From NCBI GenBank assembly GCA_964035545.1, contig OZ037772.1:5584233-5648232 (forward strand): 64,000 nt of DNA. Reading direction: 5' to 3'. This DNA is from Bugula neritina (Eukaryota; Animalia; Bryozoa). The position numbers and the translations under genes are program-made. This document shows positions 4,992 to 60,731 of the stretch, piece by piece. How positions within the stretch are numbered: the first letter of the stretch is position 1; each line of letters begins with the position of its first letter. Below the pieces are notes generated by a model, which was given only the letters and a program-made list of their open reading frames with translations, was not told the DNA's origin and did no database searches.

Positions 4992-7900
4992 ATGGCATCC
5001 AAACCACAACCAATGGTGAGATGTACTATTTGTTTATCTACACTCAAATTAGAGGAATGTAAGGCACTACCTTGTACTCACCCACACTGTGACAAGTGTT
5101 TGAATGAATTCTATGGAAGGCTGAATGCTCTTAAATGTGAAATATGTCGGTAAGTTTATGTCAAAGTCTTTGCTATGTGGTTTTCGCTACGTCTACTGTC
5201 TAGTATATATTACAGTTAATATAATATCACAAGGTGGAACGGAGCGAATTATACTATGAGTGTTGATTGATAAATGTTCTCTAAGACAAAACTAATTGAT
5301 GATCTATCAACAATAAATCAATCATTTATGTTATAGACAAGTGTTCAATACAACACCTGATAAGTTACCAACAGCAGGCCAGATGAAACAGATAGACAAG
5401 TCTATACTCTGTGAAGTCTGTACAAAATCAGGAGAGAATAATACACCTGCTCTGGTGTATTGTTTAGTTTGTTCCAAACTGTACTGTGCTAAACATGTCA
5501 TTGTAAGTTAACAATATTTTTTGTGTTTTCTGTGTATATATCCTTATATGTGATATTTTGAAACTGAAAGCTTGAGATTTTGGTGATACTTTGCAGAGAA
5601 ATAATTTAATGGCTTTGCAACAAAGTATTTACAATATTTGATTTAATTCATTATTCGAAAACATTTATATTTTATTTTCACTTGTTTTCACTCATTTGCT
5701 CACATGAATTGGTTTTGTGTCTTTACCTCCTAACATTTATCGATCAGCATGCTGTAGTTTATTATACATGAGATAAAAGTTATGATCAAGAGACATAACT
5801 GTCAAGATTGTTTTCTTACATTCATGCTTTTATTGTAATAGATTGTACAATATATCTTTAAATAATATTAAATTGTATACTATTGCATATATACTTTAGG
5901 CATTATACGATCATGACATTAGGACCATTATAATATGAATATTATATATGCAATCTTAGATGTAATATCGGTAGTAAGCCACAAACTCTTTTGAATATAT
6001 TTATCTTAGGATCATGATACTTTGTCTGAAGAACATTCTAGAATTAATGTGACAGAATACAAAGCTCGCGCTGCTAAGTTAGAGAAGAAAATGTGTGAGA
6101 CACATGCAGACGTAGAGTATTCTTTGGGTTGTAAAGTCTGTCTCAAACTATTCTGTACTCAGTGTGTACCTACAGCTGGTGTATGTGATGATGGTAAGTG
6201 TCTATTCTTCTGTTTACTTGCTATATATATTACATGATTCAGGTACACAACAGCTTATACATTACTTTGTATATATTACTTCAGGTACATCACAGCATAC
6301 ACTCTTGACATTGAAAGATTTAACAATGCAGCTGGTGGAAATCACAAAGTTAAAGACAAGAGAAGACAACTTATCTGGTTATTACAAACAGATAGCTGCA
6401 AACATTGATGAGTTTCGAACTGAAACCAAGAAGCTGCTGATGATGCTATGGAAACAGCGTGATGATCAGGTGATTATTACATGTTTTTTAAATTTGATAA
6501 TTATAAAGATCATATAGAAACTGTGAGAGTTTGTTTATAACTTTTCTATTATCATCTGAGATAACCTACTTTTTTGGTAAAACTATTCTATCCTGTCTAA
6601 CATTCAATGTGAATGTATTTAGATAGCAGCTATTCAACAGAAGTATGACAAACTAGAGAAAGAACTGGTAGAGAAGAGAGATAAGACTGAAAGTCGAGCA
6701 GTGAATTTCATGGTAGAGGAAGTTGGGGCTAGATATTGTGAGCTGTATAATCACAGAACAGGAATAGAGGCTAAGTTAGACCAATGTCATGAGGTTAGTT
6801 GCAGAGCATATATAGTAGATGTTAGGATCTGTAGCAGTTTTATGCAATATTTCGGTGTCTTTATAAAATTTATATATTTTTTGTTTCTCTATCTGTAATT
6901 AACATCTAAAGATTATATAAGTAGAAAATGGATCAGGTAATGACCAGTAATGGGACTACTATAATATAGGGCTGTCCAACATTTATGCCACCCTCAAAGA
7001 CATAAAGCAAAATTTTTTGCTCAGATATACTAATAAAAGTGGAAAAACACCCTTAATTAAATGCCTTTTTGTATACATTGCTAAAACATACAGCCTGTAT
7101 TAGTTAACAGGACTTCATTGTGTAACAATTTATAGGAATTTTGAATGAAGCAATTAAGAAAATACTGTCACTGTGTTCACAGTTCAAGCTAAGTTTAACA
7201 GACTGGTCGTTGTCATTAGAATATTTCACTTCATTTGCCCTCGGTCTGAAAAGGTTTGACACCCGGTACTATAATGCTATATGACACTGTATTATAATAC
7301 CGTAGGATACTGTATAATACAATAATACCATAATTATTACTTATAATATCATAGGATACTGTATATAGTACTATAGAACATTATATAATACTATACGTTA
7401 CTGTATAATACCATAGAGTACTGTAAACTACTGTATAGGATACTGCAGTATAATAGTTAATAGCATATGATACAGTATAGTGTATAATCGTATAGGACAC
7501 TTCACAATATACTATAGGATAATATTTTATAATACTATATTAGGATGCTGTATTTAATACCATATAGCACACTGTCAAATTTGAAATTTGTGCTTTCTTA
7601 GGGTACAGTTTAATAGCTTAAACTTCACCCATTAGTTTGTAGAAGTCTGTTTCCCTTATACTGCATTGCAATCTCTATCCTTCAATGTTTTGCATTGCAA
7701 TGCTGCTTTTTAGATTTTTTTGTTGGTGTCAAATGTAGCATTGTTGTTGATCTCATTGTCCATACTCGACCCTGACATGCTCGATAATATAAGCAAACAA
7801 CTCCCAAGCACCTGCTACACAGTGTCGCATTGTCTGTATATTTAATATTGTTAGGTTGACATCATCAAGTCATATCGTGATATGAAGAAGGAGATTGATA

Positions 7901-10127
7901 GACTGTTGACAGAAGAGATTCCTAAGTTAATGGATTTTGATTTTGTAACATCAGTTAAAATCAAAGGTTGGTTTTATATGTTATCCATGCAAAATTATTT
8001 AAAACAATATATTGAATAGAACTATAATAAATGGTCATTTTATGACATTTTGTTATGTCTTGTCGTATTTAAATAACATCATCACGGAAGTATATTTTGA
8101 CTTTTAAATTTAGGGTATATATTATGTATGTAAGTTATATGTTGCTAACTGTTACATTTCCTTCGTTTGGTATTTCACTCAATATAAATAAACTCTTGCA
8201 AGTCTATAGTCGCCATCCCTGTGAGAAACTTTTGAGGTTTTTGTTAAAGAGGGCTAAGGACTTATTTAAATGAGGCACAAGAGCAATTATGACTGGATGC
8301 TCTTCCTAGCATCACCAATAGCCTTTGTCCGGGCTCGAATCCTTGACTTTGTGCTTACTGAGCAATCGATCTAACTCATAGACTACGGCTGCTCTCAGAA
8401 ATATGCCCTAAGCGAGGACATATATTTTTAGGAGCAGCCTCAGTTTAGGAATTAGCGTGTTTGACTAGTATTTCACTTTATATATTTGTCTTATAAAAAT
8501 ACATTATACATAATAGTTTAATTTAACATGATGAAAGCATTACTATAATGATATTTTCCAAAACTGGGTTTATACTATTGCCACACTACATCCCTACAAT
8601 ATACTATTACACCATGTTTTGAAGTAAATAATGTTAGTGGGAATCTTTAGTATTTAATTTACACTGAGGAGGAAGTGGCCTACATCTCCCCCAATCTGTA
8701 TACTTCTCTCAACTATTCTATAGATTTACACACTTGTGCAATAGCTGTGCTTATACTCTTGGAGAATACTAATACAAGTTTTTGATGAACATAACCTAAT
8801 TTAATATACTAGTATATCACTAAATAGAATATCATTAGAATTGATTTTAATATTTTGTTGACATGAAGGGAGCTGCTGATTTTTTAAATTTTTTTAATAG
8901 TTGATTCCCATAAAAATAATCTGGTACGGAAAGCAAAATTGCAATTAATATTAATTTTTCAAATGGAAAGTGCACGGTCATTGCAGTGCTGCTATAGCAC
9001 TGCTGTTTGTGTAGTGATGCACCAAAATATTTATGTATATGTTTACATATCTGCTAGCTTTTCTGATGTATCAGCTGTTTTATATTATATTACCATGTCA
9101 TGCATGTCAATATTTTTATCACAGAAGAGCAAAGAAATACAGAGGTTGAGTTGACCAATGAAAGAACAGCAAGGATAACTCCTGAACAAGGACTGGTTCT
9201 CTCACCTCCACCACCCAAGGCTGTAGAACTGATAAAAGCTGTTGAAGTTTCTCCACACTGCTATTCTGTTCACACTTATAAAGGTGTCACATATGCTGGG
9301 TGTTATAGAGGTGTAGACAGGATAGATGAGAACAACAAAGTTACTAAATCATTCATCTCTATTAAAGGTAGCATTGTGTGGAGTATCTCAGTACATAATG
9401 ATAGGATATATACTCTGTCTACTGGCTCTACTGTAAGAGTTCATGACCTTGAAGGGAAGTCCATCACCAGCTGGACTCATACAGATAAATCAGGTCGGCT
9501 GTTTCAGCCGATGAATCAGCTTGCCATCATAAACAATCAGATAGCTATTCCTGACGGGCTGGATAGTACTCTAGTATTCTACTCTCTGAATGGGGAGGTA
9601 GTAAACACTCTACCTTGTCCTCTACTCACTGATACTATTGAACGTCTGTCTGCTGCATATGATAACTCAATTATTATATCACAGTGTGACTCATCTCTAG
9701 TATACAAAATAGACACCTCAACAGGTGACATCATCTGGCAGTGTAAGGAATTGACTGCACCTCGTGGAGTGATCTGCTATAGAGATGAGTTTGTAGTTGT
9801 GGCTGATAATACTAAACCTACCCAACTCTGTGTACTATCATTACATACAGGTTAGTTACTGTGTAGAATACACATATTTGATGTATATGCATTGTAATTT
9901 GATGAAATGAGTTCATACATATTTCTTGCTACAAATAAACTGCACTATCTTTATATTATCTTCAATTCTTAAAAAAACACTGTGTTTTTCTCCTCACAGG
10001 CAAGTTACTAACCAGGATATCTACAGTTGAAACCAGTTACATTCATGATCTACACATCACTGGCTCTATTCTAATAGCTTCAGCATGCTGTTCTTATAGA
10101 CAAGTCAATCTCTATCAGATCAAGTGA
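4992..10127 (+). CDS. TRIM gene copy A (RING-Bbox1-Bbox2-coiled coil-NHL-like beta-propeller), intact, 609 aa; exons 4992-5149, 5337-5502, 6010-6193, 6285-6469, 6623-6793, 7855-7966, 9125-9850, 10000-10127
   Basis: Exon1 CTIC..LPCTHPHCDKC..CEIC (C3HC4 RING); exon2 CEVC..YCLVCSKLYCAKH; exon3 CETH..CKVC..CTQC; helical exons 4-6; ~40-aa beta repeats with PRGV..VVVAD in exon 7. All introns GT-AG, phases consistent. Confidence 0.92.
7268..7570. repeat. Degenerate ~20-bp minisatellite (ctgtataatactatagga..) in TRIM intron 5
   Basis: Repeated tactgtata/atactatagga; same family at 17915-18033, 35830-36110, 45610-45870, 58165-58390. Confidence 0.7.
8180..8467 (-). mobile_element. tRNA-derived SINE-like insertion with 10-bp target-site duplication
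   Basis: gtatttcact flanks at 8170-8179 and 8468-8477; absent from the same intron position in copies B, D, E; minus strand has A-box-like gtagtctatgagttag and B-box ggattcgagccc. Confidence 0.7.
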
Positions 10128-13480: not shown

Positions 13481-16400
13481 ATGGCTTCTAAACCACAACC
13501 AATGGTGAGATGTACTATTTGTTTATCTCAACTCAAGCTAGAGGAATGTAAGGCATTACCTTGTACTCACCCACACTGTGACAAGTGTTTGAATGAAATC
13601 TATGGAAGGCTGAATGCTCTTAAATGTGGAATATGTCGGTAGGTGAATAATATCATAACATATAGTATAATATGTTACATAATGTCATACATTTCATAAT
13701 ATAATCTTTATCAATAATTTCATGGTTCATGCTATGTACAGTAGATATCCCAATTTATATAATATTAACAAGTAGAATAAGCCGATATTGGCATATTTGT
13801 ATCATAGGTAAGAATTTTTATAAGAATTTTATTTGTATTATAGGAATTTTATTATTTGCAGTATATATAATACAATCAGGTGCTTTACGTAGATACAGTA
13901 TTGTGAAGATCGTTTTGATTGCTACCACAATTGCAGTTGAAGGTCATTAGAGTAGCGTTTCAGTAATTTTAGTGCTTAATATGGAAAGCTACCTTGTTAA
14001 TCACAATGTCTCATAAAGTTTCACTACATTTGAGGTCCTAATCGGCACTACAAAGCTGGTCTCAATTTTTTTGTTTTAAGTTTTTGTAAGTTGAATTATT
14101 CACAATGTAATAAAATCATCATTAAGTAGATTAGGTTTGAAAGTAATTTCATTGTTCGAATGTGTGGAGGTAGTTTTTAGGCAGTTTTTCAACACCTGCC
14201 ACCTTCTTAGATTTAGATTGTGAATAGTAGATGAATGTATTGGTATGAGGAATGTTAAACAAAACACGCTTTGTTTTCTTATTCTTTTGAAAACTAGTCG
14301 AGCTTTTATAGTTTTGTGAGTGAAGTAGTGATAATATAAGACACAAGAAACACAAAGAAATTGCACCCAATAGATGGATTGTTACATACAATGTAACTCT
14401 TTTATTTTCTAATTATTCCAATCCTTTAATTTTTAGTTGCATGCATAGCCAAGTCCTATAACCCAGTAGCTGTATGATTTGAATCAAGTTTATTTTATCA
14501 GGGCAGAATCACAATAATAAATGTTCGTACTGCCACATGATTTATTATATGTAGTCTGTTGTGTAATAAAATATATCTTATAATCAGGTGGTGCTATAAA
14601 GAAGTTTGCAAATCGTAAATTTGTCTCATTGTGACATTATAGTAGGAGTTGTGTGACTTAATATGGCAGCTTTGAGATGAGTTGTAATGTATCCTGTACA
14701 GAGACCTATAGTTTGCTTTACTGTGAATTCAACAGGGATATTGTATGTCAGTATGACATGGTACTATAACCAGAGTGTAGGGATTTAGATACCGATAGTT
14801 GTATATCATAAATGATTTACAAAAAGAAGAGGAACACAGTTATTTGATTGACTGAATGTTGATAGCAAGCTTTCTTACTTAATCCTTAAGTCAAAGTATT
14901 AGAATGTATTCAGGTTGTCAATGACTACGTTTAAATCAAAAGCTAGTCAGTTCAAGTTCTCCAATGTAATATATTAGAGATCAATGGAGCATATCAATGA
15001 GATGTAATGCCTTACTAAACATACTTTGTTATTGAACAACCTGAATGCTATTTGGAAATAACTTAGCTTTTCTAGTTATAGAAAGTTGTGACAATAGAGA
15101 AAAACAACATTAATAAACACTGAGATTTGTACACAATTGTTCTATTGTTATTTGTTCAATGGAGATCTTTGATTTTTTAACTCTATTATTTTTATGAATA
15201 ACTTGTACAATGAAGCATTGGTTCAGTAATTGTGTATAGAGTCGAATAGATTTTATCAGAATAATTTGTCACAATAATAAATATTATGCAAAGCAAGACT
15301 GAGTGCTAAATGTGTTTAATCAAAGCACTCCGAACCAATTCCATTTTACTATGACATGTTTAATGCAAGTTTACATCATCCATAGAATATCCCAGCGCCA
15401 ATATTACTAAAAGTTGCATGTCATTTGATATATTGAGATGTGTAAAATAGGAGCTAGTAAAAATTATTTTCAAAAGACTTTGAGAAATGTTTGTTCAGTC
15501 TACAGATCTATATAGTTGTTCTACAGTGGCTTATAGATGGAAACATTGTTCTCCCTATACATAATCAAAAGTGATACTGTTAATATGGAAAGAGCCAGCA
15601 TTACAATATTCTCTTCTTGAAGAATTTATAATGGCACATTTTTTATGTCATAATATATTGGAATATTCAATTATATCTCAGTTTTACTCTACAGAATATT
15701 TGAACGCTTTTATAAGACGCAAGCAAGTTTGTTCTAGAAACAACTTTGAATTAATTTGAAATTTTTGATTGCTTGTTGGTAAAACCTATAACAGGTTATA
15801 TAAGGCTAGTGGCATTTTAGAATTATTATTAAAAATTAATTTTAGGATTTCATTGCATGCTATTTTTAGCCGCAATAGTTGCAACACACAAGAGCAACCA
15901 TGGTCTAGACTTTAGTGTTGCTCTAATCATGTGTAGTGAGTCTTACATGGGTCTAATTAAAAAAAAATGTATACACAAGGGCAGGTATTTTAAGATAAGC
16001 AGGATTTTAATTTAGCAATAATAAATTTAGCAATAGTTGGTTATTTATTATACCTTGTTGTATCATTGTATCGTAACAAAACTTATATAGCAGATAATGT
16101 TGCATGTATTCATCATTTATATTACAGACAAGTGTTCAATACAACACCTGATAAGTTACCAACAGCGGACCAGATGAAACAGATAGATAAGTATATACTC
16201 TGTGAAGTCTGTACAGAGTCAGGAGTGAATAATACACCTGCTCTGGTGCATTGTTTAGTTTGTTCCAAACTATTTTGTGCTAAACATGTCATTGTAAGTG
16301 AACACTCAGTAATTGTTTTCTGTATATGTTCTTTTATGTTTAGTATAACTGGATAGGTGTAGCAACCCGCTTTGTTTCAAAATAGTATTAAATCAAAAAT

Positions 16401-19400
16401 TTGGATTTTTAATATGTTTTGCTGAGAAAAAATTTGCTGGTTTCACAAAAAAAACTCTACAATATTTTATTTAAAAAACTTTTCAACAAATTAAACAAAA
16501 ATAATCATTCATTTTCGTCTATGTTCTCACATGAATTTAGATTTTAAAATATTATATTAGATTACCAAACATCACACTTTAATTAACTATACTTTGGATA
16601 AAGTTAGGAGCAAAAGGACATAACTCTCATTCCTAACCAAACACAACATTCATACTACTATGAACTATCATATCATGCTGCACAATATAGCTTTATATAA
16701 TTTTTGAATGAGTTACGTAACTATGGGTGTATATCTTGTACATATGTACAAGATATACACCCATAGTTACGTAACTCATTCAAAAATTATACATAATAAA
16801 AACAGGATTTATGTATCATAATGGCTATATGCCTTGATGTTAACATATGTTAACATCAAGGCATATAGCCATTATGATACATAAATCCTGTTTTTATTAT
16901 GTATAATGTCATCAATAAATTAAGTACTATACCCCATAATATAACTCTGTTATAGGATCATGACGTTGTGTCTGAAGAACACTCTAGAATAAATATGACA
17001 GAGTACAAAGCTCGTGCTGCTAAATTAGAGAAGAGAATGTGTGAGACACATGCAGACGTAGAGTATTCTTTGGGTTGTAAAGTCTGTCTCAAACTACTCT
17101 GTACTCAATGTGTATCTACAGCTGGTGTATGTGATGACGGTAAGTGTCTATTCTTCTGTTTACTTGCTATATATATTACATGATTCAGGTACACAACAGC
17201 TTATACATTACTTTGTATATATTACTTTAGGTACATCACAGCATATACTCTTGACATTGAAAGATTTAACAATGCAGCTGGTGGAAGTCACAAAGTTAAA
17301 GACAAGAGAAGGCGACTTATCTGGTTATTACAAACAGATAGCTGCAAGCATTGATGGGTTCAGAACTGAAACCAAAAATTTATTGGTTTTGATAAGGACA
17401 CAGCGTGATGATCAGGTGATTATTACATGGTTTTTAAGTTTGATATAATTATAAAGATTATATTATAGAAGCTGTGAGGGTTTGTTTATAGTTCTCTGTA
17501 TAGCCATCTGAGATAAGTTACTTTTTGGGAAATGTAAGATGATTATACACTCAGACACTCTTCAAATTTTTCTAGCTTGTCTAACATTTAATGTGACTGT
17601 ATTTAGATAGCAGCTATTCAACAGAAGTATGACGAATTAGAGAAAGAACTAATGGAGAAGAGAGAAAAGACTGAGAGTCAAGCAGTGAATTTCATGGTAG
17701 AGAAAGTAGGGGTTAGATATCGTGAGCTGTATAATCACAGAGAAGGAATCGAGGCTAAGTTAGACCAAAGTCATGAGGTTAGCTACAGAGTATGGATGGA
17801 TAGTAGATATTATGGTGTGTGTATCTGTGGCAGTTTGATATTTTATATTTAACATCTTATATAGATCATTCAAGTAATATAAATAGATATAATGTAATAA
17901 AAAGAATTCTCGATACTATATAGAATACTGCATAATACTACAGCATACTGTATAACACTATGTAACACTGTATAATACTATAGGACACTGTATATAATAC
18001 TATAGGATACTGTATAATACTATAGGACACTGTATGATCTATGTAGGGCACAGCAGATATTTAGTGTAGAGTTTGTCCATTCGTTTGTAAATGCTTCTTG
18101 TTCTAAATTGTGCTTTTCAATCTCGATATTGCAATTTTTTGCATTGCAACGCATATTAATGCAATGCTGCTTTTTAGATGGTTTTGTTGGTTTCAAATAC
18201 AGCATTATTGTTGGTCTTATTGTTCATACTCAACACTGGCGTTCTCTATAATAGCATACAACTTCCAAACACCTGCTACACAGTGTCACATTGTATGTAT
18301 ATGTAATATTGTTAGGTTGACATCATCAAGTCATATGGTGATATGAAGAAGGAGATTGATAGACTGTTGACAGAAGAGGTTCCTAAGTTGGCACATTTTG
18401 ATCTTGTAACATCTGTGGAGGTCAAAGGTCAGTTTTATATATGTTAAAGGTCAGTTTTATGTTATCAATATGCAAAACTACTTAAAACAAGATAATGAAT
18501 AGCTTAATAACCCTATTTATTTTTATGACACTTTTATATCTAACCGTATTTATGTAACCTAATTAAGTAATTATATTTTGACTTTTGAATATGAGGTATA
18601 TATGCATGTTAGCTATAGCTACATTTCAAACTGTTACATTTTCATCATCTTGTATTTCACTTTTTTGATCTGTGTTGTAAAAATATATTATAAATACTGA
18701 TTCAATTTAACGTGGTGTTAAGGCACTATTATTTTCAAAAACTAGGTTTGTACTATTGCCACACTACACCCCTACGTACACCCCTACAAGATCCTATTAA
18801 ACCAATTTATATGGTAAATAATGTTAGTGGGAATCTTTAGTATTTAATTTACACTGAGGAGGAAGTGGCCTACATGTCCCCCATCTGTATACTTCTCTCA
18901 ACTACATTATAGATTTACACACTTGTGCAATAGCTGTGCTTACTCTTGGAGAATACTAATATACAAGTTTTTGGTGAACATAACCTAATTTAATATAGTA
19001 GTATATCACTAAATAGAATATCATTAGAATTGATTTTAATATTTTGTTGACATGAACACAGCTGCTGATTTTTTTCCGCAGTAAATTTTTTTCAATAGTT
19101 GATTGCCATAAAAATAATCTGGTCCAAAAAATCAAAATTATAAAAGTGCACGATACTGGCAGTGTTGCTATAGCACTACTGTTTGTGTAGTGATGCACAA
19201 AGATATACATGTATGTTTACATATCTGCTAGTTTTTCTGATGTATCCGCTGTCTTATATATTATATTACCATGTCATGCATGTCAATATTTTATCACAGA
19301 GGAGAAAAGATATACCGAGATTGAGTTGACCAATGAAAGAACAGCAAGTATAACTCCTGAACAAGGACTGGTTGTCTCACTTCTACCACCCAAGTCTGTA

Positions 19401-20265
19401 GAACTGATAAACTCTGTTGAAGTTTCTCAATGCTGCGAGTCCGTCCACACCTATAGAGGTATCACATATGCTGGGTGTTATGGAGGTGTAGACAGGATAG
19501 ATGAGAACAACAAAGTTACTGAATCATTCATCTCTATTAAGGGTAGCATTGTGTGGAGTATCTCAGTACATAATGATAGGATGTATACTCTGTCTTCTGA
19601 TTCAACTGTAAGAGTTCATGACCTTGAAGGCAAGACTATCACCAGTTGGACTCATGCAGATAGAAAAACAGCGTGGATGAATCAGCTAGCCATCATAAAC
19701 AATCAGATAGCTATTCCTGACAGGCTGAATAAGACTCTAGTACTCTACTCTCTGAATGGGGAAGTAGTAAACACTTTACCCTGTCCTCTACTCACTGATA
19801 CTGCTGTATGTCTGTCTGCTGCAGATAACAACTCAGTTATTATATCTCAGTATCACTCATCTCTAGTATACAAAGTAGACACCTCATCAGGTGACATTAT
19901 CTGGCAGTGTAAGGATGTGGCTAAACCTCGTGGAGTGACCTGCTATAGAGATGAGTCTGTACTTGTGGCTGATTATACTGAACCTACCACACTCTGTGTG
20001 CTATCATTACATACAGGTTAGTTACTGTGTAGCATACACATAGTTTACAATATACCTGCATTATTATTTGATGAAATGAGTTCATTCATATAATTTATAT
20101 ATTTCCTACAAATAAACTGCACTCTTTTTATATTATCTTTGATTCCTAAAAAAGAACATTATGAATTTTATCTCAACAGGCAAGTTACTAACCAGGATAT
20201 CTACTATAAAGAGTCACATACCTGATCTCCACGTCAATGGCTCTATTCTAGTAATTCCAGTATAA
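13481..20265 (+). CDS. TRIM gene copy B, 592 aa, last exon ends early after a +2 frameshift; exons 13481-13638, 16128-16293, 16956-17139, 17231-17415, 17607-17777, 18316-18427, 19300-20016, 20180-20265
   Basis: Same exon structure as copy A; in exon 8 cca gta taa stops before the conserved GQVKFYQLK tail, which survives in another frame. Confidence 0.88.
16696..16907. repeat. Two abutting perfect palindromes (16696-16791, 96 bp; 16786-16907, 122 bp)
   Basis: Both centred on catatg; arms checked by reverse complement. Confidence 0.95.
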
Positions 20266-22465
20266 GCTCTTATAATGGACAAGTCAAGTTCTATCAGCTA
20301 AAGTAAAAGTAAACTGATAGAGTGGGATTCTCAAGTAAAGGTCAGTAAATGTTGTTTCGAGTCCTTCTCTAATTCATGTTTCTAATGCTGCTTTGTATTG
20401 ATTAGTTTTACATCTTCTTATATAATATTTTGTGTTGTATTGCATTTTATTGCATAGAAATATTATGAATTTTTATAGTCTTATAATAATATTGTCGGTT
20501 ACCTATATAGTAGTGGACACATTATTACCAGTTATCTCCCCTCATTATATTTATCAATCAATAATTAAATTATAAAGCAACTGTTTACAATACTGTGTAT
20601 ATACTAATGTCTCATAGTATTATGTTATTATAACATGGCGGATATTGTATATACTAGACATCTCTGCTATGCTTTGTAGAACACAACATGTTGAGTCATA
20701 CATAAGGAGTTACCTTCCCAGTACGTCACTGCTTTAATGAGTCAACTAAGTCAGTTCACTTCACTATAGACGTCTGCATGTTTAACTTCCTACTTTACAG
20801 TAGACTACTAGACAGACTATAACCACGCGATCTGCCAATATAGTACAAGTAGTGTTTTTCATTCATTATCACTCAAGTTCTTGTACTGATGCATTATATA
20901 CAGGAAAATCCAGGTTATTGTGCGTTATATCAATTATACACAATCTTTTTCTATAATTAATCTGTAAACTTTATAGGCTATAAAGTTTTTAATGGTGGTG
21001 GCTACATATATATTATGTACTTTAAATTTGCAAAATTTTCTTTCAATTTCCTATTATTTTCTATCTTGACTATAAACTTTTGTTATTTGCAATTATCCAG
21101 CCAAATTAATTGTGTCTATGTTTGCTGTCTTAGAAATTACTAATGCATTAGATTTTGTTTATAATATGAACAGATTGCTGTGTTGCATTGAGATATGATA
21201 TGCTGTGAAGCTGTTTTTAGTTATTATATGGAGTTATTATCAGTATAACAAGAAATAGCACATCATATTCTTACAATATTATGCAGTTCCTTTGATAAAG
21301 ATAGGATTAATTTTTAATTATCAGTTGATTCTCTGTTTAATAAAGAGAAATCCAAAAATTATACCCAGTTTTACATTGAATACTGTGTAATATTTTTGTT
21401 ATCACCTTCTATAAAATATCGCACATCTATTAGACATGTTACAAATATAGGAATTGGTCAGCAGTTCATAAACAATCAATTTTTATTTAGTATAAACTGT
21501 TTTAGTACTCTGCAAAAACTCCATTTTATAAAACTTTGTGGAACCTATCTTAATACATGTGAATAGCCACTTTCCTAGAGATTAAAGCCACTAATAATTT
21601 GAGTGCAGCCTAACTCGCCTTATTTTTTCAGCTTGTTATGCAGTGTACTATTAAATGATATTATAAGCTAGAATTGAAGGTTTCACTTAAAAGTTCTTGC
21701 TACAAAAGATATGGCAGCTGATATTTCTACAAACCTAAACTATACCCTTCATTTCGCTAAAAAGCAAAAAATTTCTATCTACAAAGTACTGACGTACAGA
21801 GATATTTTTTTCAGTAAGGGATTATTATTTATAATTTGAATGTTATATTATAATAAAAGCAGAGATCAAGCCAAAACGGTGTCTGCTTCGCACAAGAAAC
21901 TAAGTTTCAGGTAAAGTTTTGTCAACCATCACATTCTGTTCACCAAAACTCTTTAAACATTTCTACAAACTCAAATTGATTTCCATGCAGCAACAACAAT
22001 CAAACTGACATGTTATATTATATATCAGACCATATGATATAAAATTTAACGCTTTAGTATTATCTTTTGTGTGCTTCTTGTAACCTTCCATCTCTACTAT
22101 AATATTATATATAGTAAACATTGTACAAAGCATATTATAGTTGCTATTAATTAGAGTTGTATCTACTGTGGTGAGTTACCTTATAATATTATAGGTCAGA
22201 GCTGTTTAAGCAGTGAGAAGGAAGTATATATAATCTGAGTATAGTTATAGAAATATTAGAAGACATGTTCTGTCTATTTAATAATCAACACTGTTACATG
22301 CTACCTCTGCTGCAATATTCATGTGTTTTAACTCAACATATACAAGCAACACTTCATGGAGCTGGTCACATCTTAGTAATACTACAGTAGAAATAATAAA
22401 TATATTTGGGTGATATTTACTATAGTAATAAGTCACTCTCTCTTTAATTGGTGGAAGAAATTGAT

Positions 22466-24662: not shown

Positions 24663-26937
<2,275 letters not shown>

Positions 26938-36900: not shown

Positions 36901-38075
36901 GTACAAGTTAATAGCACTGATGTTTTTTGTATAGTGATACACAAAGATATACATGTATGTGTACTTATCTGCTAGCTTTTCTGATGTATCAGCAGTCTTA
37001 TATTATATTACCTTGTCATGCATGTCAATATTTTATCACAGAGGAGCAAAGAAATACAGAGATTGAGCTGACCAATGAAAGGACAGCAAGTATAACTCCT
37101 GAACAAGGACTAGTTCTCTCACCTCCACCACCCAAGTCAGTAGAACTGATAAGCACTGGTAAAGTTTCTCCATACTGCTATTCTGTTTACACCTATAAAG
37201 GTATCACATATGCTGGGTGTGATGGAGGTGTAGACAAGATAGATGAGAACAACAAAGTTACTGAATCATTCATCTCTATTAAGGGTAACGATGTGTTGAG
37301 TATCTCAGTACATAATGATAGGATATATACTCTGTCTACTGGCTCTACTGTAAGAGTTCATAACCTTGAAGGGAGGTTCATTACCAGCTGGACTTATGTA
37401 GATGATAAATCAAAGTGGCTAAATCAGCTTGCCATCATAAACAATCAGATAGCTATTCCTGACAGGCTGAATAAAACTCTAGTACTCTACTCTCTGAATG
37501 GGGAGGTAGTAAACACCTTACCCTGTCCTCTACCTACATATTCTAATGTAAACACTTTTTCCTGTTCTCTACTCACTGATACTTCTGTACATCTGTCTGC
37601 GGCAGATAATAACTCAGTGATTATATCTCAACTTTACTCATCTCTAGTATACAAAGTAGACACCTTATCAGGTGACATCATCTGGCAGTGTAAGGATGTG
37701 GCTACACCTCGTGGAGTGACCTGCTATAGAGATGAGTTTGTACTTGTGGCTGATTATACTGAACCTACCTCACTCTGTGTGCTATCCTTACATACAGGTT
37801 GGTTACTGTGTAAAATACACATAATTGATGTATATGCATTGTAATTTGATGAAATGAGATCATACATATTTATTGCTGCAAATAAACTGCACTATCTTTA
37901 TATTATCTTTGATTCTTAAAAAAAAAACACTGTGTTTTTTCTCTTCACAGGCAAGTTACTAACCAGGATATCCACTGAAAAGAGTTACATATCTGGTCTC
38001 CACATTACTGGCTCTACTCTAGTAGTTCCAGTTTTGTCTTCTAAGGGACACGTTAAGTTCTATCAGCTGAAGTGA
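33908..38075 (+). CDS. TRIM gene copy C, intact, 618 aa; exons 33908-34065, 34253-34418, 34868-35051, 35143-35327, 35520-35690, 36395-36506, 37042-37797, 37951-38075
   Basis: Same architecture and phases as copy A; 13-aa in-frame duplication in the propeller. Confidence 0.92.
35830..36110. repeat. 20-bp minisatellite (ctgtataatactataggaca)n
   Basis: Regular 20-bp period visible. Confidence 0.93.
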
Positions 38076-41009: not shown

Positions 41010-41384
41010 GTAATTAGTCTAACAAGTTTATTAGTTCAACTTGCCACTTTTCAGCTGGTAATTATTTACATTGCTAGTTTATTTAGAAGAAAATACATTT
41101 ATTCTATTTCAAGTATTATTATTAATGTAGTTGAAAAGCAAAACAATTTTAGTATTTATACGTTTTATCATATGTTTCAGCTGCTTTAAGCACTCTGGGT
41201 GACTTGTAGCACCTGTTAGGGGTATTCATATGTGTAGTGTTTTTATATAACCTTGTAAGTACTGTAATTACAGTAAAGAAGTTTCCACTATATAGTATAT
41301 GTTATACAATATAATGTGCATTGGATACAATACTTCTTATATTTATGCTATTTAATAAAAAAACACATACCTATTACACTTGTG

Positions 41385-44300: not shown

Positions 44301-47300
44301 GTAAATGAAATTATTCATTCGTTTTCATTCATATGTTCACATGAATTAAAATTTTGGAATGTATTGATCAGCAAATATCATAATGTGAGTTGTTATACGT
44401 TGGATAAAGTCATGATCAAGTGTACATACAACTATCAAGACTAACTAATTATAACATTTGTGGCACTATAACATACTATATGCTGTGTAATATGGCTTTA
44501 TATATTTTTTGAACGAGTTGTGCAATTTTGGATGTATATTTTCTACATTATAGCATAATGACATAGCCATTAAAATACATATACATGCTTTTTTATATAT
44601 AATGTCATCAATTATAAATTAAGTACTACTCTATAATATAACTTTGTTGTAGGATCATGACGTTGTGTCTGAAGAACACTCTAGAATTGATATGACAGAG
44701 TATAAAGCTCGTGCTGCTAAGTTAGAGAAGAGAATGTGTGAGACACATGCAGACGTAGAGTATTCTTTGGGTTGTAAAGTCTGTCTCAAACTACTCTGTA
44801 CTCAGTGTGTACCTACAGCTGGTGTATGTAACGATGGTAAGTGTCTATTCTTCTGTTTACTTGCTATATATATTACATGATTCAGGTACACAACAGCTTA
44901 TACATTACTTTGTTATACTTCAGGTACATCACAGCATACACTCTTGACATTGAAAGATTTAACAATGCAGCTGGTGGAAATCACAAAGTTAAAGACAAGA
45001 GAAGACAACTTGTCTGGTTATTACAAACAGATAGCTGCAAGCATTGGTGGGTTTAGAACTGAAACCAAAAATCTATTGGTTTTGATAAGGACACAGCGTG
45101 ATGATCAGGTGATTATTACATGGTTTTTAAGTTTGATATAATTATAAAGATCATATTATAGAAGCTATGAGAGTTTGTTTATAGTTCTCTGTATAAACAT
45201 CTGAGATAAGTTACTTTTTTGGGAAATGTAAGATGATTATACACTCAGACACTCTTCAAATTTTTCTAGCTTGTCTAACATTTAATGTGACTGTATTTAG
45301 ATAGCAGCTATTCAACAGAAGTATATGACGAACTGGAGATAGAACTGGTGGAGAAGAGAGAAAAGACTGAGAGTCAAGCAGTGAATTTCATGGTAGAGGA
45401 AGTGGGGGTTAGATACCGTGAGCTGTATAATCACAGAGAAGGAATCGAGGCTAAGTTAGACCAAAGTCATGAGGTTAGCTACAGAGTATAGATGAATAGT
45501 AGATGTTATGGTGTGTGTATCTGTGGCAGTTTGATATTTTATATTTAACATCTTATATAGATCATTCAAGTAATATAAATAGATATAATGTAATGAAAAG
45601 AATTCTCGATACTATATGGAATACTGCCTAATACTACAGCATACTGTATAACACTAAATAACACTGTATAATACTATAGGACACTGTATATAATACTATA
45701 GGATACTGTATAATACTATAGGACACTGTATAATACTATAGAGTACTGTATAATACTATAGGACACTGTATAATACTATAGGATACTGTATAATACTATA
45801 GGACACTGTATAATACTATAGGACACTGTATAATACTATAGGAAACTGTATAATACTATAGGACACTGTATGATCCATGTAGGGCACAGCAGATATTTAG
45901 TGTAAAGTTTGCCCATTCGTTTGTAAATGCTTCTTGTTCTAAATTGTGCTTTTCACTCTCAATATTGCAATTTTTTGCATTGCAACGCATATTAATGCAA
46001 TGCTGTTTTTTAGATGGTTTTGTTGGTTTCAAATACAGCATTGTTGTTGGTCTTATTGTTCATACTCAAAACTGGCGTTTTCTATACTAGCATACAACTT
46101 CCAAACACCTGCTACACAGTGTCACATTGTATGTATATGTAATATTGTTAGGTTGACATCATCAAGTCATACCGTGATATGAAGAAGGAGATTGATAGAC
46201 TGTTGACAGAAGAGATTCCTAAGTTGGCACATTTTGATCCTGTAACATCTGTGGAGGTCAAAGGTCAGTTTTATATATGTTAAAGGTCAGTTTTATGTTA
46301 TCAATATGCAAAACTACCTGAAACAAGATATTGAATAGCTTAATAACCCTATTTATTTTTATGACACTTTTTTATCTAACCGTATTTAGGTAACATAATC
46401 AAGTAAGTATATTTTGACTTTTGAATTTGAGGTATATATATGCATGTTATAGCTATAGCTATGTTTCAAACTGTTACATTTTTATCATCTTGTATTTCAC
46501 TTTTTTGATCTGTGTTGTAAAAATATATTATAAATACTGATTCAAACTAACGTGATGTTAAGGCACTATTATTTTCAGAAACTAGGTTTTTACTATTGCC
46601 ACACTACACCTCTATTATACGTACACCCCTACAATATCTTATTAAACCAGGTTATATGGTAAATATAGTTAGTGGGAATCTTTAGTATTTAATTTACACT
46701 GAGGAGGACGTGGCCTACATCTCCCCCAATGTGTATACTTCTCTCAACTATTCTATAAATTTACACATTTGTGCAATAGCTGTGCTTACTCTTGGAGAAA
46801 ACTAATACAAGTTTTTGGTGAACATAACCTAATTTAATATAGTAGTATATCACTAAAATAGAATATCATTAGAATTGATTTTAATAATGTGTTTACATGA
46901 ATGCAGCTGCTGCATTTTTTCTGCAGTAAACTTTTTTCAATAGTTGATTCCCATAAAAATAATCTGGTCAAAAAAACCAAAGTTATACTATTTATTTTTA
47001 AATGGAAAGTGCATGATCATTGCAGTGTTGCTAGCACTGCTGTTTGTGTCGGGATGCACAAAAATATACATGTATGTGTACATATCTGCTAGTTTTTCTG
47101 ATGTATCAGCTGCTTTTATAATATATTACTATGTCATGCATGTCGATATTTTTATTACAGAAGAGAAAAGAGATATAGAGATTGAGCTGACCAATGAAAG
47201 GACAGCAAGTATAACTCCTGAACAAGGACTAGTTGTCTCACCTCCACTGCCCAAGTCTATAGAACTGATAAAAGCTGTTAAAGTTTCTCTGGGCTGCTGG

Positions 47301-48165
47301 TCTGTTCACACTCATAGAGGTGTCGCATATGCTGGGTGCAAGGGTGGTGTGGACAGGGTAGATGAGAACAACAAAGTTACTAAATCATTCATCTCTATTA
47401 AAAGTGAAGGTGTGTTGAGTATCTCAGTACATAATGATAGGATATATACTCTGTCTTCTGATTCAACTGTAAGAGTTCATAACCTTGAAGGGAGGTTCAT
47501 TACCAGTTGGACTCATGTAGATGATCGATCAAAGTGGCTAAATCGGCTTGCCATCATAAACAACCAGATAGCTATTCTTGACAGGCAGAATAAGACTCTA
47601 GTACTCTACTCTCTGAATGGGGAGGTAGTAAACACTCTACCCTGTCCTCTACTTACTGATACTCCTGTACGTCTGTCTGCTGCAGATAACAACACAATTA
47701 TTATATCTCAGTATCACTCATCTCTAGTATACAAAGTAGACCCCTCATCAGGTGGCGTCATCTGGCAGTGTAAGGAAGTGGCTCAACCTTGTGGAGTGAC
47801 CTGCTATAGAGATGAGTTTGTACTTGTGGCTGATGATGCTGTACCTACAACGCTCCGTGTACTATCATTACATACAGGTTAGTTACTGTGTAGAATAGAT
47901 ATAGTGTATGAAATACATGTGTTATAATTTGATGAAATGAGTTCATTCATATTTATAGTTATTTGCTGCAAATAAACTGCACTCTCTTTATATTATCTTT
48001 GAGTCTTAAAAAAAGAACATCATGCTGTTTTTCTTGGCAGGCAAGTTACTAACCAGGATACTTACTGAATACAAACTCATATACAATCTCCACGTCACTG
48101 GCTCTACTCTAGTAGTTCCAGGTTATTCTTCTAATGGACAAGTCAAGTTCTATCAGCTGAAGTGA
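41385..48165 (+). pseudogene. TRIM copy D: RING exon largely deleted and +2 frameshift in exon 5; remnant 41385-41418, exons 43939-44104, 44653-44836, 44924-45108, 45301-45473, 46152-46263, 47161-47877, 48041-48165
   Basis: Versus copy B ~178 bp (acceptor, ATG, most of RING) missing; aagtatATgac gives stop TAG at 45340-45342; propeller exon still open. Confidence 0.88.
45610..45870. repeat. 20-bp minisatellite (ctgtataatactataggaca)n
   Basis: Regular 20-bp period visible. Confidence 0.93.
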
Positions 48166-54760: not shown

Positions 54761-54790
54761 ATCAACTATTTCAAAGTTTTACTGAAGAGC

Positions 54791-55525: not shown

Positions 55526-58500
55526 ATGGCATCTAAACCACAACCAATGGTAAGATGTACTATTTGTTTATCTAAACTCAAGTTAGAGGAATGTAAGGCA
55601 CTACCTTGTACTCACCCACACTGTGACAAGTGTTTGAATGAATTCTATGGCAGGCTGAATGCTCTTAAATGTGGAATGTGCCGGTAGGTGAATAATATCA
55701 TAACATATAATATAATATGTTACATAATATTCTATATTTCATATAAATAATGTTTATTATAGTAATATAAATATTGTAGATAGGTGAATAATATAATAAT
55801 ATATAATATAATATGTTACATAATATTATGTAGGTATTTTATAATAATGTTTATTATAATATGAATAATATGATGGTATTTACTATATGTGTTTATGCTA
55901 AATGTAGTATACCTGTATTGCTATACCAGGTTATATAACAGATAGTGTTACACTGTAAACTTTTATATATAATTATTATACTTTATATACTATATAGCCT
56001 ATAGTTAATGATCTATCACTAATAAATTCATCATTAATTTTATAGACAAGTATTCAATACAACACCTGATATAAGTTACCAACAGTAGACCAGATGAAAA
56101 AGACAGATAAGTCTATACTCTGTGAAGTCTGTACAAAGTCAGGAGTGAATAATACACCTGCTCTGATGTATTGTTTAGTTTGTTCTAAACTGTACTGTGC
56201 TAAACATGTCATTGTAAGTTAACATTCTGTAGTTTTTAGCTGTGCGTTTTTATGCGCATGTGTGCACATGCAGTTTTATTTGTCTATAGACTCTAAAGTA
56301 AATTAGCCACCATCAGTTAACAATATTTATTGTGTTTTCTGTGTATGTATCCTTATATTTTGTATAGATAGATTGGGGTAGCCAAATTGCCAGAAAACCA
56401 GGTATATTCGGATTTTTGTGTTATTTCACAGAGAAAGAATTTAATGATTTTGGAATACAAAATCCACAATATTTGAATCCATTGATCAAGCGAAAGAATT
56501 CACTTATTTCCACTCATTTACCCATATGAATTGGTTTTTATGCTTTCAGAGTTTAGCAAATATAGATTAGCATACATTATGCTGTAATTTGGAATACCCT
56601 GGATAAAATATATGCTTAAGGGGACATAACTCTCATGATTTACTTGTTGCATTCATGATTCTATTCCACTATAAATTGCACAGTATATAGTTTTTAGTAT
56701 TATTCAAAGTATATCATATAGCATTGCATATATACTTTTCGCAGTATAAAACTATGACATTGAGGCTATTATAATATGTAAATGCAATTTAATACACAAT
56801 ATCATTAGTAAAATGCGTACTACTCTGCATATATTTTTTGTAGGATCATGACATTGTGTCTGAAGAACATTCTAGAATTAATATGACAGAGTACAAAGCT
56901 CGTGCTGCTAAGTTAGAGAAGAGAATGTGTGAGACACATGCAGACGTAGAGTATTCTTTGGGTTGTAAAGTCTGTCTGAAACTACTCTGTACTCAGTGTG
57001 TACCTACAGCTGGGGTATGTGTCGATGGTAAGTGTCTATTTGTTTTGTTTACTTTCGATATATATTACATGATTCAGGTACACAACAGCTTATACATTAT
57101 ACTTTGTATATATTACTTTAGGTACATCACAGCATACACTCTTGACATTGAAGGATTTAACAATGCAGCTAGTGGAAGTCACAAAGTTGAAGGCAAGAGA
57201 AGACAACTTATCTGGTTATTACAAACAGATAGCTGCAAACATTGATGAGTTTCGAACTGAAACCAAGAAGCTGCTGATGTTGCTATGGAAACAGCGTGAT
57301 GATCAGGTGATTATTACATGGTTTTTAAATTTGATAATTATAAAGATCATATAGAAGCTGTGAGAGTTTGTTTATAGCTTTTTATAATCATCTGAGATAA
57401 GCTAATTTTTGGTTATAGATGCAAGATGGTTATACACTCAGACACTCCTCAAACTATTCTAACTTGTCTAACATTTAATGTGAATGTATTTAGATAGCAG
57501 CTATTCAACAGAAGTATGACAAACTGGAAAAAGAACTGGTGGAGAAGAGAGAAAAGACTGAGAGGCAAGCCGTGAATTTCATGGTAGAGGAAGTTGGGGC
57601 TAGATACTGTGAGCTGTATAATCACAGAGAAGGAATAGAGGATAAATTAGACCAAAGTCATGAGGTTAGTTGCAGAGCATATATAGTATATGTTTGGATC
57701 TGTAACAGTTTTATATATTTTGATGTTTTTATATAATTTCTATATTCATTGTTTCTCTATCTGTAAATAACACCTAAAGAGTACATAAGTAGAAAATGGA
57801 TCAGGTAATAACCCATAAAGGCAGTAATGGAACCGTACTATAACATATCATGCTGTATAACACAGGACTGTCCAACATTTATGCTACCCTCAAAGGCATA
57901 AACATAAAATTATGTTGCTCTATCAGATATATAAATTAGAGTGGAAAAAATACTTTTTAAATACATGTATCTTTGTGTACATGCTAAAACATGCAGCCTG
58001 TAGTAGTTAATGGGACTTTATTGTGTAATGATTTATAAGAATTTGGAATGAAGTAATTTGAAAAATGCTGTCATTGTGGCTCAGCTCAAGTTAAGTTTTA
58101 CAGAGTGGCCTCCAGCCACCAGCGTATTCCATTTTATTTGCTGTCGGTCTGCAAGGTACCCAGTATACTAACACTATATGACACTGTATTATAATACCGT
58201 AGGATATTGTATAATACAATAATACCATAATACTTTTAATATCATAGTATACTGTATAGTACCATAGGACACTACATAACACTATATGATACTGTATAAT
58301 ACTATAAAATACTGTATAGTGTTATAGGATACTGCAGTATAATACTATATGATACTGTATAATATGCTATATTAGGATACTGTATTTAATAGCATAGCCC
58401 ACTGCACATTAGCGTCAGCTTTGAAATCTGTGCTCCCTTAAGGTACAGTTTATTAGAATAAACCTTACCCATTTATAGTTGGTAGTAGTCTGTTTCCCTT

Positions 58501-60731
58501 ATACTGCATTGCAATCTCGATCCATCAGTCTTTTGCATTGCAATGCTGCTTTTTAGATGGTTTTGTTGGTGTCAAATATAGAATTGTTGTTGATTTCATT
58601 GTTCATTCTCAGCACTGCCATTCTCTATAACTATAACTATATACCTTCCAAACACCTGCTACACAGTGTCACAATATCTGGATTATATATGATACTGTTA
58701 GGTTGACACAATCAAGTCATATCGTGATATGAAGAAGGAGATTGATAGACTGTTGACAGAAGAGATTCCTAAGTTGGCACATTTTGATCTTGTAACATCT
58801 GTGGAGGTCAAAGGTCAGTTTTATATGTTATCCATGTAAAATAACTTAAAACAACATGTTGAATATATTCAATAAGTTGTTTTAAGTTATTTTGCATTCA
58901 ACATTCATAGTTCTATAGAACTATGAATGTTGTTCACCTTTATGACACTTTTTATCTAGCTGTATTCAAGTAGCACAATCAAGTAATTATATTTTGACTT
59001 GTTGAATTTGAGGTATATATGTATGTAAGGTATAGCTATGTTTTAAACTGTTACATTTTCATGATCTTGTATTTCACTCTATTGATCTGTGTTATAAAAA
59101 CACATTATAAATCATGTTTTAAATTAACATGGTGAAGGCACTATTATTTTCAAAAACTGGGTTTGTATTATTGCCACACTACACCCCTACAATATCCTAT
59201 TAAACTAAGTTATAAGGTAAATAATGGTAGTGGGGATCTTTAGTGTTTAATTTACACTGAAAGGGCGAGTGGCCTACATCTCCCCCAATCTGTAAGCTTC
59301 TCTCAACTACATTGTAGATTTACACACTTGTGCAATAGCTGTGCTTACTCTTGGAGAATACTAATACAAGTTTTTGATGAACATAACCTAATTTAATATA
59401 GTAGTATATCACTAAATAGAATATCATTAGAATTGATTTTAATATTTTGTTGACATGAAGGCAGCTGCTGATTTGTTTCCTGCAGTAAATTTTTTTCAAT
59501 AGTTGATTTCCATAAAAAAATTTGGTCTAAAAAGCCAAAATTATATTATTAATTTTTTAAAATGAAAAGTGCATGGTCATTGCAGTGCTGCTATAGCACT
59601 GCTGCTTGTGTAGTGATGCACAAAATATATACATGTATTTGCTTACTTATCTGCTAGTTTTTCTGATGTATCAGCTGTTTTATATTATATTACCTTGTCA
59701 TGCATGTCAATACTTTATTACAGAAGAGAAAAGAAATATAGAGATTGAGCTGACCAATGAAAGGACAGCAAGTATAACTCCTGAACAAGGACTAGTTCTC
59801 TCACCTCTACCACCCAAGTCTGTAGAACTGATAAAAGCTGTTGAAGTTTCTCCATTCTGCTATTCTGTCCACACCTATAAAGGTATCACATATGCTGGGT
59901 GTTATGAAGGTGTACACAGGATAGATGAGAACAACAAAGTAACTAAATCATTCATCTCTATTTATAAGTATGGAGGTGTGGAGAGTATCTCAGTACATAA
60001 TGATAGGATATATACTTTGTCTTCTGATTTAACTGTGAGAGTTCATGACCTTGAAGGGAGGTTCATTACCAGCTGGACTCATACAGATAATAAATCAAAT
60101 TGGCTAAACCAGCTTGTCATCATAAACAATCAGATAGCTATTCCTGACAGGCTGAATAAAACTCTAGTATTCTACTCTCTGAATGGGGAAGTAGTAAACA
60201 CTTTACCCTGTCCTCTACTCACTGATACTACTGTACGTCTGTCTGCTGCAGATAACAACTCAGTTATTATATCTCAGTATGACTCATCTCTAGTATACAA
60301 AGTAGACACCTCATCAGGTGACATCATCTGGCAGTGTAAGGATGTGGCTAGACCTCTTGGAGTGACCTGCTATAGAGATGAGTTTGTACTTGTGGTTGAT
60401 GATGCTGTACCTTCCTCACTCTGCGTACTATCATTACATACAGGTTAGTTACTGTGTAGAATATACATAGTGTATGAAATACATGTGTTATAATTTGATG
60501 AAATGAGTTCATTCATATTTATAGTTATTTGCTGCAAATAAACTGCACTCTCTTTATATTATCTTTGAGTCTTAAAAAAAGAACATCATGCTGTTTTTCT
60601 TGGCAGGCAAGTTACTAACCAGGATACTTACTGAAAACAGTTACATACCTGATCTCCACGTCACTGGCTCTACTCTAGTAGTTCCAGGTCATTCTTCTAA
60701 TAGACAAGTCAAGTTCTATCAGCTGAAGTGA
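55526..60731 (+). pseudogene. TRIM copy E: +2 frameshift in exon 2 (stop 56086-56088); exons 55526-55683, 56046-56213, 56844-57027, 57122-57306, 57494-57664, 58702-58813, 59724-60443, 60607-60731
   Basis: cctgatATaagtta vs cctgataagtta in other copies; remainder open from ATG 56094. Confidence 0.88.
58834..58932. repeat. Two abutting palindromes (58834-58897 imperfect; 58899-58932 perfect)
   Basis: Centres gaata|tattc and ttcta|tagaa. Confidence 0.88.

Follow-up and report, generated by a model that had tools for sequence, protein, structure and literature searches.

Tandem TRIM-type genes of Bugula neritina with a propeller diversified on one predicted face: a candidate recognition repertoire

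Gene structure of the array and fold of its products

The window analysed here, a 64-kb stretch of contig OZ037772.1 of the bryozoan Bugula neritina, was found by self-comparison to hold five tandem, same-strand TRIM-like paralogues, A to E, in units of ~5–7 kb, the same number that had been claimed in an initial annotation of this DNA. Each gene encodes, in order, a RING, two B-boxes, a coiled coil and a divergent six-bladed NHL-like propeller. The gene model was built by hand for copy A and then mapped onto copies B to E; it comprises eight exons with canonical AG/GT borders in all copies (Table 1), and in copy A the frame is open and the product has 609 residues. A first, seven-exon model placed the stop at a TAG after ...SLHTG and was rejected: this TAG sits within the donor CAG/GTTAGT, and most relatives from the bryozoan Watersipora subatra extend ~40 residues beyond ...SLHTG. 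Using the Watersipora C-terminal tails in tblastn searches, we found an eighth exon ~150 nucleotides (nt) 3′ of exon 7 in every copy, which in copy A encodes the end of blade 5, blade 6 and the stop. The end coordinate of the initial annotation, 60731, is the last base of exon 8 of copy E.

Only copies A and C are intact. In copy B a 2-nt insertion (+2 frameshift) in exon 8 leads to a premature stop, and the last strand, GQVKFYQLK, is lost, lying out of frame at ~20268–20294. Copy D has lost the RING, exon 1 being reduced to its final 36 nt, and carries a TA duplication (+2 frameshift) in exon 5; copy E carries an AT duplication (+2 frameshift) in exon 2. Both D and E retain open exons 7 and 8. 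The exon 7 donor of copy C is GTTGGT, and its propeller has a 13-residue insertion in the blade 3–4 loop.

In copy A the RING is a complete C3HC4 with all eight Cys/His ligands (C11-x2-C14-x13-C28-x-H30-x2-C33-x2-C36-x12-C49-x2-C52). Pfam matched exon 1 to zf-RING_2 (E 8.6e-5) and zf-C3HC4 (E 0.004), exon 2 to ANCHR-like_BBOX (E 1.2e-4) and exon 3 to zf-B_box (E 0.002), all under the curated cut-offs; homologues yielded the same B-box matches, and the Cys/His columns were invariant in the Watersipora alignment. An AlphaFold 2 (AF2) model of P0074, a full-length Watersipora homologue, contained the RING, two B-boxes, a helix of 112 residues (174–285), a return helix (288–307), a disordered linker and the propeller. 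With the coiled coil modelled on this homologue, the window genes are predicted to be of the TRIM type, with a RING/B-box/coiled-coil (RBCC) half and a long coiled coil. No filamin domain was found.

The NHL-type propeller named in the initial annotation was borne out by fold and profile comparisons. The AF2 model of the exon 7 product (predicted local distance difference test, pLDDT, 86.7) matched the NHL domains of TRIM2 and Brat with Z 20.1 (root-mean-square deviation 2.6–2.9 Å over 206–214 residues); Z was ~20 for TRIM2, Brat and Mei-P26, and YWTD propellers followed within 1 Z unit. With a profile of 43 paralogues the top hit was the NHL domain of Brat (E 8.5e-9), followed by Thin, NHL-2, TRIM3 and TRIM2; all other propellers ranked below these. 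The nearest ESM Atlas clusters were NHL families. Identity to solved NHL domains was 11–15%. The Pfam NHL model (PF01436) had no match at E ≤ 1 in the five window propellers, and one Watersipora relative reached E 0.092. Since the gathering score of PF01436 was not reached, membership in TRIM-NHL is a matter of remote homology and not of a match to the curated model. The generic propeller families PQQ_2 and IP5PC_F matched only below threshold and were set aside, and no SPRY or PRY domain was matched by Pfam in any copy or homologue, the fold being a propeller.

The first AF2 model, made from exon 7 alone, lacked blade 6 because exon 8 was not in the first gene model; in its place the model put a low-confidence segment from the N-terminus, which was disordered in the model of the full-length homologue. 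When the exon 8 peptide was folded as a second chain, it docked as the sixth blade with a score of 0.88 against 0.01 for the best control, a mark attained by 51 of 78 solved complexes and by 2 of 108 mismatched pairs. The docking runs had at least 96% of contacts in common, with a partner pLDDT of at least 79. In these models the first strand of exon 8 pairs with residue 234 of blade 5, and its last strand closes the ring by pairing with the first strand of exon 7 (residues 33–39).

Variable patches and selection on the propeller

Differences between the propellers are concentrated at recurring spots. The seven series of short motifs that the initial annotation had listed for copies A to E were all exact in our exon 7 alignment, and the indels that it claimed were recovered as LFQP in copy A, one extra residue in E and the 13-residue insertion of C. 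Among the five copies the 34 patch residues had a nonsynonymous divergence (dN) of 0.458, against 0.070 in the rest of the propeller. We found further patches that had not been listed, one in blade 5 (NTKPT, residues 228–232) and two in exon 8.

Pairwise comparison of the five copies gave dN 0.046, synonymous divergence (dS) 0.169 and dN/dS (ω) 0.27 for exons 1–6, and dN 0.116, dS 0.135 and ω 0.86 for exon 7. Because dS is similar in both halves, conservation of the RBCC half reflects purifying selection and not homogenisation. Protein identity of the RBCC exons was 78–95% among the five copies, with a DNA divergence of 5–7.5%, so the earlier description of these exons as almost invariant was too strong.

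Site-specific selection was examined in a codon alignment of exon 7 from 30 paralogues, many of them from a second cluster of the family (see below), using custom code for a codon model with a free discrete ω distribution on a fixed tree. The one-ratio ω was 0.76. Freeing ω, as compared with ω ≤ 1, raised twice the log-likelihood (2dlnL) by 420, with 24 sites at a posterior probability P(ω>1) > 0.95. With synonymous-rate variation in the model, 2dlnL was 159 (18 sites at P > 0.9), and with three segment-specific trees it was 146, 114 and 124, revealing the same sites. As a negative control we used the complete RBCC exons of 11 genes, which gave ω 0.29 and 2dlnL 3.7, as compared with 2dlnL 114 for exon 7 of the same 11 genes. 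Exon 8, analysed in 28 paralogues, had ω 1.14 and 2dlnL 33, with two patches. Single sites of exon 7 reached a posterior mean ω of 4–17, and the synonymous rates of the selected codons averaged ~1 in a two-rate model. In addition, the patches listed in the initial annotation were scored in 25 paralogues that it had not seen, where tree-free dN/dS was 1.65 (bootstrap 0.97–2.82) as compared with 0.44 elsewhere. The initial annotation had held that dN/dS at or below 1 at these spots would speak against it; the site tests find a class with ω > 1. As judged from codon comparisons, selection is diversifying at the variable spots and purifying in the RBCC half.

Such a pattern might also come from mutation with no part for selection, through targeted hypermutation or a hot spot of mutation at the codons of the loops; this would fit both the restriction of variation to short recurrent patches and a slightly higher dS there (0.255 vs 0.194). 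However, this rise is only 1.3-fold, whereas patch dN is five times that of the rest; the synonymous rates of the selected codons are ordinary, the excess is confined to amino-acid-changing substitutions, and no repeat or motif marks the patches. We regard a mutational origin as highly improbable.

Consecutive strands of a propeller are antiparallel, and thus its D-A and B-C loops lie on one face and its A-B and C-D loops on the other. With loops assigned a priori from the strands of the model, tree-free dN/dS was 1.16 in the D-A and B-C (top) loops, 0.38 in the loops of the opposite face and 0.50 in the strands. The D-A and B-C loops held 17 of the 24 selected sites (Fisher p 4e-7); the remaining ones were mostly first residues of strand A, and only one lay in an opposite-face loop. 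These results agree with the proposal of the initial annotation that the spots precede strand A and follow strand B and would form one face, and by strand topology the sites are not scattered over the structure. When exon 8 was included, strongly variable patches were found in 10 of 12 top-face loops; the exceptions, in blades 2 and 3, were the B-C loops, which vary only modestly. Furthermore, in 16 Watersipora paralogues, which represent an independent expansion, the same positions were the most variable (Mann–Whitney p 6e-6).

The wider family, its mosaicism and its expression

The array belongs to a large family. The propeller exon has at least 151 matches in the 216-Mb genome, and ~95% of them are open; ~35 close copies (67–83% identity) form two clusters on the contig of the window, and more than 100 distant copies (27–44% identity) lie on eight other contigs. 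The two clusters, at 5.42–5.79 Mb and 9.96–10.39 Mb, are in opposite orientation and 4.5 Mb apart. The nearest relatives of copies A, C, D and E sit in the second cluster and not next to them, and their order is not colinear, indicating that the two arrays are linked by duplication and/or exchange. When 1.8 billion proteins were searched with a profile, 1368 relatives came up, the named ones being 'uncharacterized' or 'TRIM2-like' proteins of Watersipora subatra, with lengths of 563–626 residues; uncharacterised Watersipora proteins are also the closest relatives in public data. A separate search for homologous proteins returned only Watersipora paralogues. The W. subatra models P0074 and P0158 stop with ...TGNCCI, where the exon 7 donor lies; read-through into the intron has probably cost them the last exon and thereby the sixth blade.

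The tree of exon 7 was star-like, and its three segments rejected each other's trees (approximately unbiased (AU) test, p < 0.003), as did the RBCC exons and exon 7 of the same genes (AU p ≤ 3e-4). Identical patch variants recur in otherwise unrelated copies. Together, these findings show that paralogues exchange exons and shorter tracts and that the genes are mosaic.

Decay was also evident. Disabling changes were present in five of the 11 genes with complete RBCC data, and exon 8 was broken in 2 of 30 copies. Two paralogues, L057 (gene L007) and L055 (gene L029), have AA for AG at the acceptor of exon 4 and exon 3, respectively, with the exons in frame, and are possible splice-site pseudogenes. 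We considered whether exon 7 is specially preserved in genes with a broken RBCC half (0 of 30 vs 5 of 11 broken) and did not accept these counts as evidence, because the 30 loci had been picked as top full-length single-piece matches and intactness was a condition of the sampling. At least three close copies have a split or stop-containing exon 7, and a rough corrected breakage of ~10% for exon 7 against ~45% for the RBCC half is at most suggestive. Counts of private nonsynonymous and synonymous changes (N/S) outside the hot spots did not differ between broken and intact copies (29:8 vs 61:18).

These findings bear on an explanation that dispenses with an adaptive repertoire, namely relaxed constraint and gene conversion in a redundant, decaying family whose loops tolerate change and in which tree-based tests over-count. 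It draws on the lesions in three of the five window copies and in the RBCC-complete genes, on private changes that are near neutral outside the hot spots, on the strong mosaicism and on the lower bootstrap bound of the tree-free patch ω, 0.97. Yet relaxation cannot lift ω above 1, and single sites reach the values given above at ordinary synonymous rates. The unequal rise of dN and dS in the patches argues against it as well, as do the low dN/dS of the bottom-face loops, which are equally without secondary structure, the silence of the RBCC half of the same recombining genes, the open state of most propeller exons and the variation of the same sites in Watersipora. We therefore consider relaxation decidedly unlikely.

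The array might also work as a germline cassette system, in which propeller exons, among them those of copies with a broken RBCC half, stay open through continued use, either as conversion donors for intact genes or by being spliced, as alternative 3′ exons, to the RBCC exons of an intact gene upstream. The phase of the exon 6/7 junction is the same in every copy, and if this were true the family would hold more receptor variants than intact genes; we consider such use unlikely.

Transcription was assessed for copy A. Three RNA-type runs covered its exon bins and left the intron bins empty, and a DNA run covered every bin. RNA contigs contained GT..AG joints at the predicted junctions of introns 1, 3, 4 and 5. 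These contigs were short and were accepted at ≥96% identity, and the transcript, spliced as in the model, is that of copy A or of a near-identical allele or paralogue, copy A itself being the probable source. For exon 7 the RNA coverage probably comes from copy A itself, given a difference of ~9% in DNA to the nearest paralogue, as estimated from the exon 7 tree. The initial annotation had named a lack of transcription of copies A/C as evidence against its proposal; for copy A no such lack was observed.

Other features of the window were recorded alongside. No further TRIM exon relics were detected in it at E < 1e-3, and an Rfam search of the window gave no match. Between copies B and C the array is interrupted by an unrelated gene with C2-domain-like exons, of which two open frames resemble C2 domains of the synaptotagmin type. 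The same interval contains ~1.4 kb of imperfect (TA)n, which accounts for a dip in GC content to 17%. Within intron 6 of copy A a short stretch has a very high contig depth, up to 3e5, in RNA as well as DNA runs, which suggests a high-copy interspersed repeat, possibly tRNA-derived, with loose ends such as GGGCTCGAACCCATGACTT. A 28-nt tandem repeat with the consensus AAGTAAGTACAGTGGTATAGTATTTACT occurs in two blocks, and a 20-nt minisatellite lies in intron 5 of copies C and D, with shorter relatives in A and B.

Table 1. Positions of the genes, variable patches and other features (window coordinates; residue numbers refer to the exon 7 or exon 8 peptide of copy A)
Feature	Position	Strand	Details
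Copy A	4992–10127	+	Intact; exons 4992–5149 (RING), 5337–5502 (B-box 1), 6010–6193 (B-box 2), 6285–6469, 6623–6793, 7855–7966 (coiled coil and linker), 9125–9850 (blades 1–5), 10000–10127 (end of blade 5, blade 6, stop)
Copy B	13481–20265	+	Exons 13481–13638, 16128–16293, 16956–17139, 17231–17415, 17607–17777, 18316–18427, 19300–20016, 20180–20265; exons 1–7 open
Copy C	33908–38075	+	Intact; exons 33908–34065, 34253–34418, 34868–35051, 35143–35327, 35520–35690, 36395–36506, 37042–37797, 37951–38075
Copy D	41383–48165	+	Broken; exon 1 remnant 41383–41418, then 43939–44104, 44653–44836, 44924–45108, 45301–45473, 46152–46263, 47161–47877, 48041–48165
Copy E	55526–60731	+	Broken; exons 55526–55683, 56046–56213, 56844–57027, 57122–57306, 57494–57664, 58702–58813, 59724–60443, 60607–60731
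Exon 7 patches, copy A	9253–9822	+	Residue 1 at 9127; residues 43–46 (9253–9264), 58–61 (9298–9309), 80–85 (9364–9381), 119–129 (9481–9513), 170–173 (9634–9645), 186–188 (9682–9690), 210–213 (9754–9765), 228–232 (9808–9822)
Exon 8 blade 6 patches, copy A	10023–10115	+	K at 10002 is residue 1; residues 8–16 (10023–10049), 28–38 (10083–10115)
Exon 7 sites with P(ω>1) > 0.95 (24)			Residues 44, 46, 60, 61, 82, 83, 85, 111, 112, 119, 123, 124, 125, 129, 151, 171, 173, 187, 188, 211, 213, 228, 230, 232
Unrelated gene	28900–31720	+	C2-domain-like exons; open frames 30197–30547 and 31470–31718
Possible interspersed repeat	8104–8435		Intron 6 of copy A
Imperfect (TA)n	25092–26498		Between copies B and C
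28-nt tandem repeat	375–1267		32 copies
28-nt tandem repeat	29892–30070		6 copies
20-nt minisatellite, intron 5 of copy C	35832–36111		~13 copies
20-nt minisatellite, intron 5 of copy D	45609–45871		~13 copies

A candidate recognition repertoire and its known counterparts

We favour, with moderate confidence, the interpretation that the array is part of a large tandem family of TRIM-type E3 ligases whose propellers, diversified on the top face, form a recognition repertoire for ligands that, by analogy, would come from viruses or parasites. Such a protein would be a cytosolic E3 ligase with the RBCC half as a conserved effector and dimerisation module and exons 7 and 8 as the recognition module. 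The family would have grown by tandem and segmental duplication and lost members through frameshifts, in a birth-and-death process, and its paralogues swap exons and sub-exon tracts. Positive selection acts on about two dozen residues of exon 7 and two patches of exon 8, in the D-A and B-C loops of every blade, and would yield varied binding surfaces on a common ligase chassis, each propeller binding a different fast-evolving ligand and directing ubiquitination or signalling. Components of viruses or of other intracellular parasites are, by analogy, the most likely ligands. The initial annotation had proposed an E3-ligase sensor repertoire with a propeller in place of SPRY; its propeller, its single face and diversifying selection were upheld by our analysis, and its pathogen ligand and immune function rest on the likeness to TRIM5 and finTRIM.

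The same architecture and selection could arise if the ligands were endogenous or conspecific, for example RNA or protein of transposons and other selfish elements, factors of gamete or germline conflict, or the molecules that decide whether colonies fuse or reject each other. The top face of canonical TRIM-NHL propellers is known to bind RNA (PMC4015489, PMC5908797), NHL-2 acts in small-RNA pathways (PMC6351104), and the closest mechanistic parallel, the hypervariable top-face WD40 propellers of fungal NWD/HET proteins, serves allorecognition (PMC1805685, PMC2873952). Moreover, bryozoans are colonial, and our sequence and selection results do not discriminate between sources of selective pressure. 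However, neither a signal peptide nor a membrane segment is present in the proteins, whose RING begins at residue 11, and this makes direct allorecognition at the cell surface unlikely. Trp, Arg, Tyr and His are over-represented at the hypervariable sites, whose net charge varies between paralogues from −5 to +5, giving no support in the sequences for a common RNA-binding, or other nucleic-acid-binding, surface. In addition, the known expanded and positively selected TRIM families are antiviral (PMC3137616, PMC3845644). Overall, we hold endogenous or conspecific ligands to be possible, if somewhat unlikely.

Several points weigh against a repertoire of immune receptors. The immune role is drawn by analogy with TRIM5alpha and finTRIM. 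Three of the five window copies are damaged, their lesions being taken from the assembly, and the assignment of the transcripts to copy A is probable and not proven. The private N/S outside the hot spots is ~3.4–3.6 in broken and intact copies alike, near the estimated neutral value, indicating weak constraint on individual copies. The selection tests were made with custom discrete-ω mixture code on fixed trees and not with PAML or HyPhy; heavy recombination inflates likelihood ratios of this kind, recombination is heavy here, and the tree-free interval for the patches of the initial annotation just includes 1. Finally, the assignment of loops to faces is topological, from the strands of predicted models and not from coordinates, and the Pfam matches to NHL, RING and B-box are all under the curated cut-offs.

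A repertoire of this kind would be of interest in several respects. It would be a lophotrochozoan case of more than 150 ligase genes in which an NHL-type propeller serves as a hypervariable surface for recognition, with the same variable positions in a second bryozoan. If the ligands are pathogen-derived, the family is a candidate repertoire of intracellular immune receptors in Bryozoa. Up to twelve variable loops on a rigid propeller scaffold may also interest those who engineer binders. In the literature searched we found no report of an expanded, positively selected family of the TRIM-NHL type, nor of a bryozoan or invertebrate TRIM-NHL expansion, and nothing on immune recognition in Bryozoa.

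Expanded and positively selected TRIM families are a hallmark of antiviral defence in vertebrates and have been described with SPRY as the variable part. In domain order, the array genes are the same as the TRIM-NHL proteins (Brat, Mei-P26, LIN-41/TRIM71, TRIM2, TRIM3, TRIM32, NHL-2 and Thin), which are also their best structural and profile matches, and Brat and LIN-41 are documented to bind ligands through the top face (PMC4015489, PMC5908797). Canonical TRIM-NHL genes are few and conserved 'group 1' TRIM genes under purifying selection, regarded as regulators of development (PMC2533329), whereas the family described here has more than 150 copies and a diversifying top face, and differs further in the missing filamin domain, the unmatched PF01436 and the low identity to solved NHL domains.

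TRIM5alpha and TRIM22 of primates and finTRIM/btr of teleosts are likewise tandem-amplified RBCC E3 ligases with a conserved N-terminal half and a birth-and-death evolution that leaves pseudogenes. In TRIM5 and finTRIM, positive selection falls mainly on surface loops of the C-terminal recognition domain (PMC3137616, PMC3845644), and the array genes share with them both this feature and the conserved RBCC half. They differ in that the recognition domain of TRIM5 and finTRIM is a PRY-SPRY (B30.2) beta-sandwich, whereas the array genes have a six-bladed propeller, one face of which offers up to twelve variable loops, and in that the host is a lophotrochozoan, in which an antiviral function is suggested by analogy.

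The fungal STAND proteins of the NWD type, HET-E, HET-D and HET-R, also have a propeller as recognition surface, a few positively selected, diversifying top-face positions in each blade and exchange between paralogues (PMC1805685, PMC2873952). Their scaffold is HET/NACHT and their unit of variation is the shuffled WD repeat, whereas in the array genes the scaffold is RBCC and exons or sub-exon tracts are exchanged between genes; kingdom and propeller family differ as well. If the ligands of the Bugula propellers are pathogen-derived, the hypervariable WD40 receptors of fungi would have an animal counterpart in this family.

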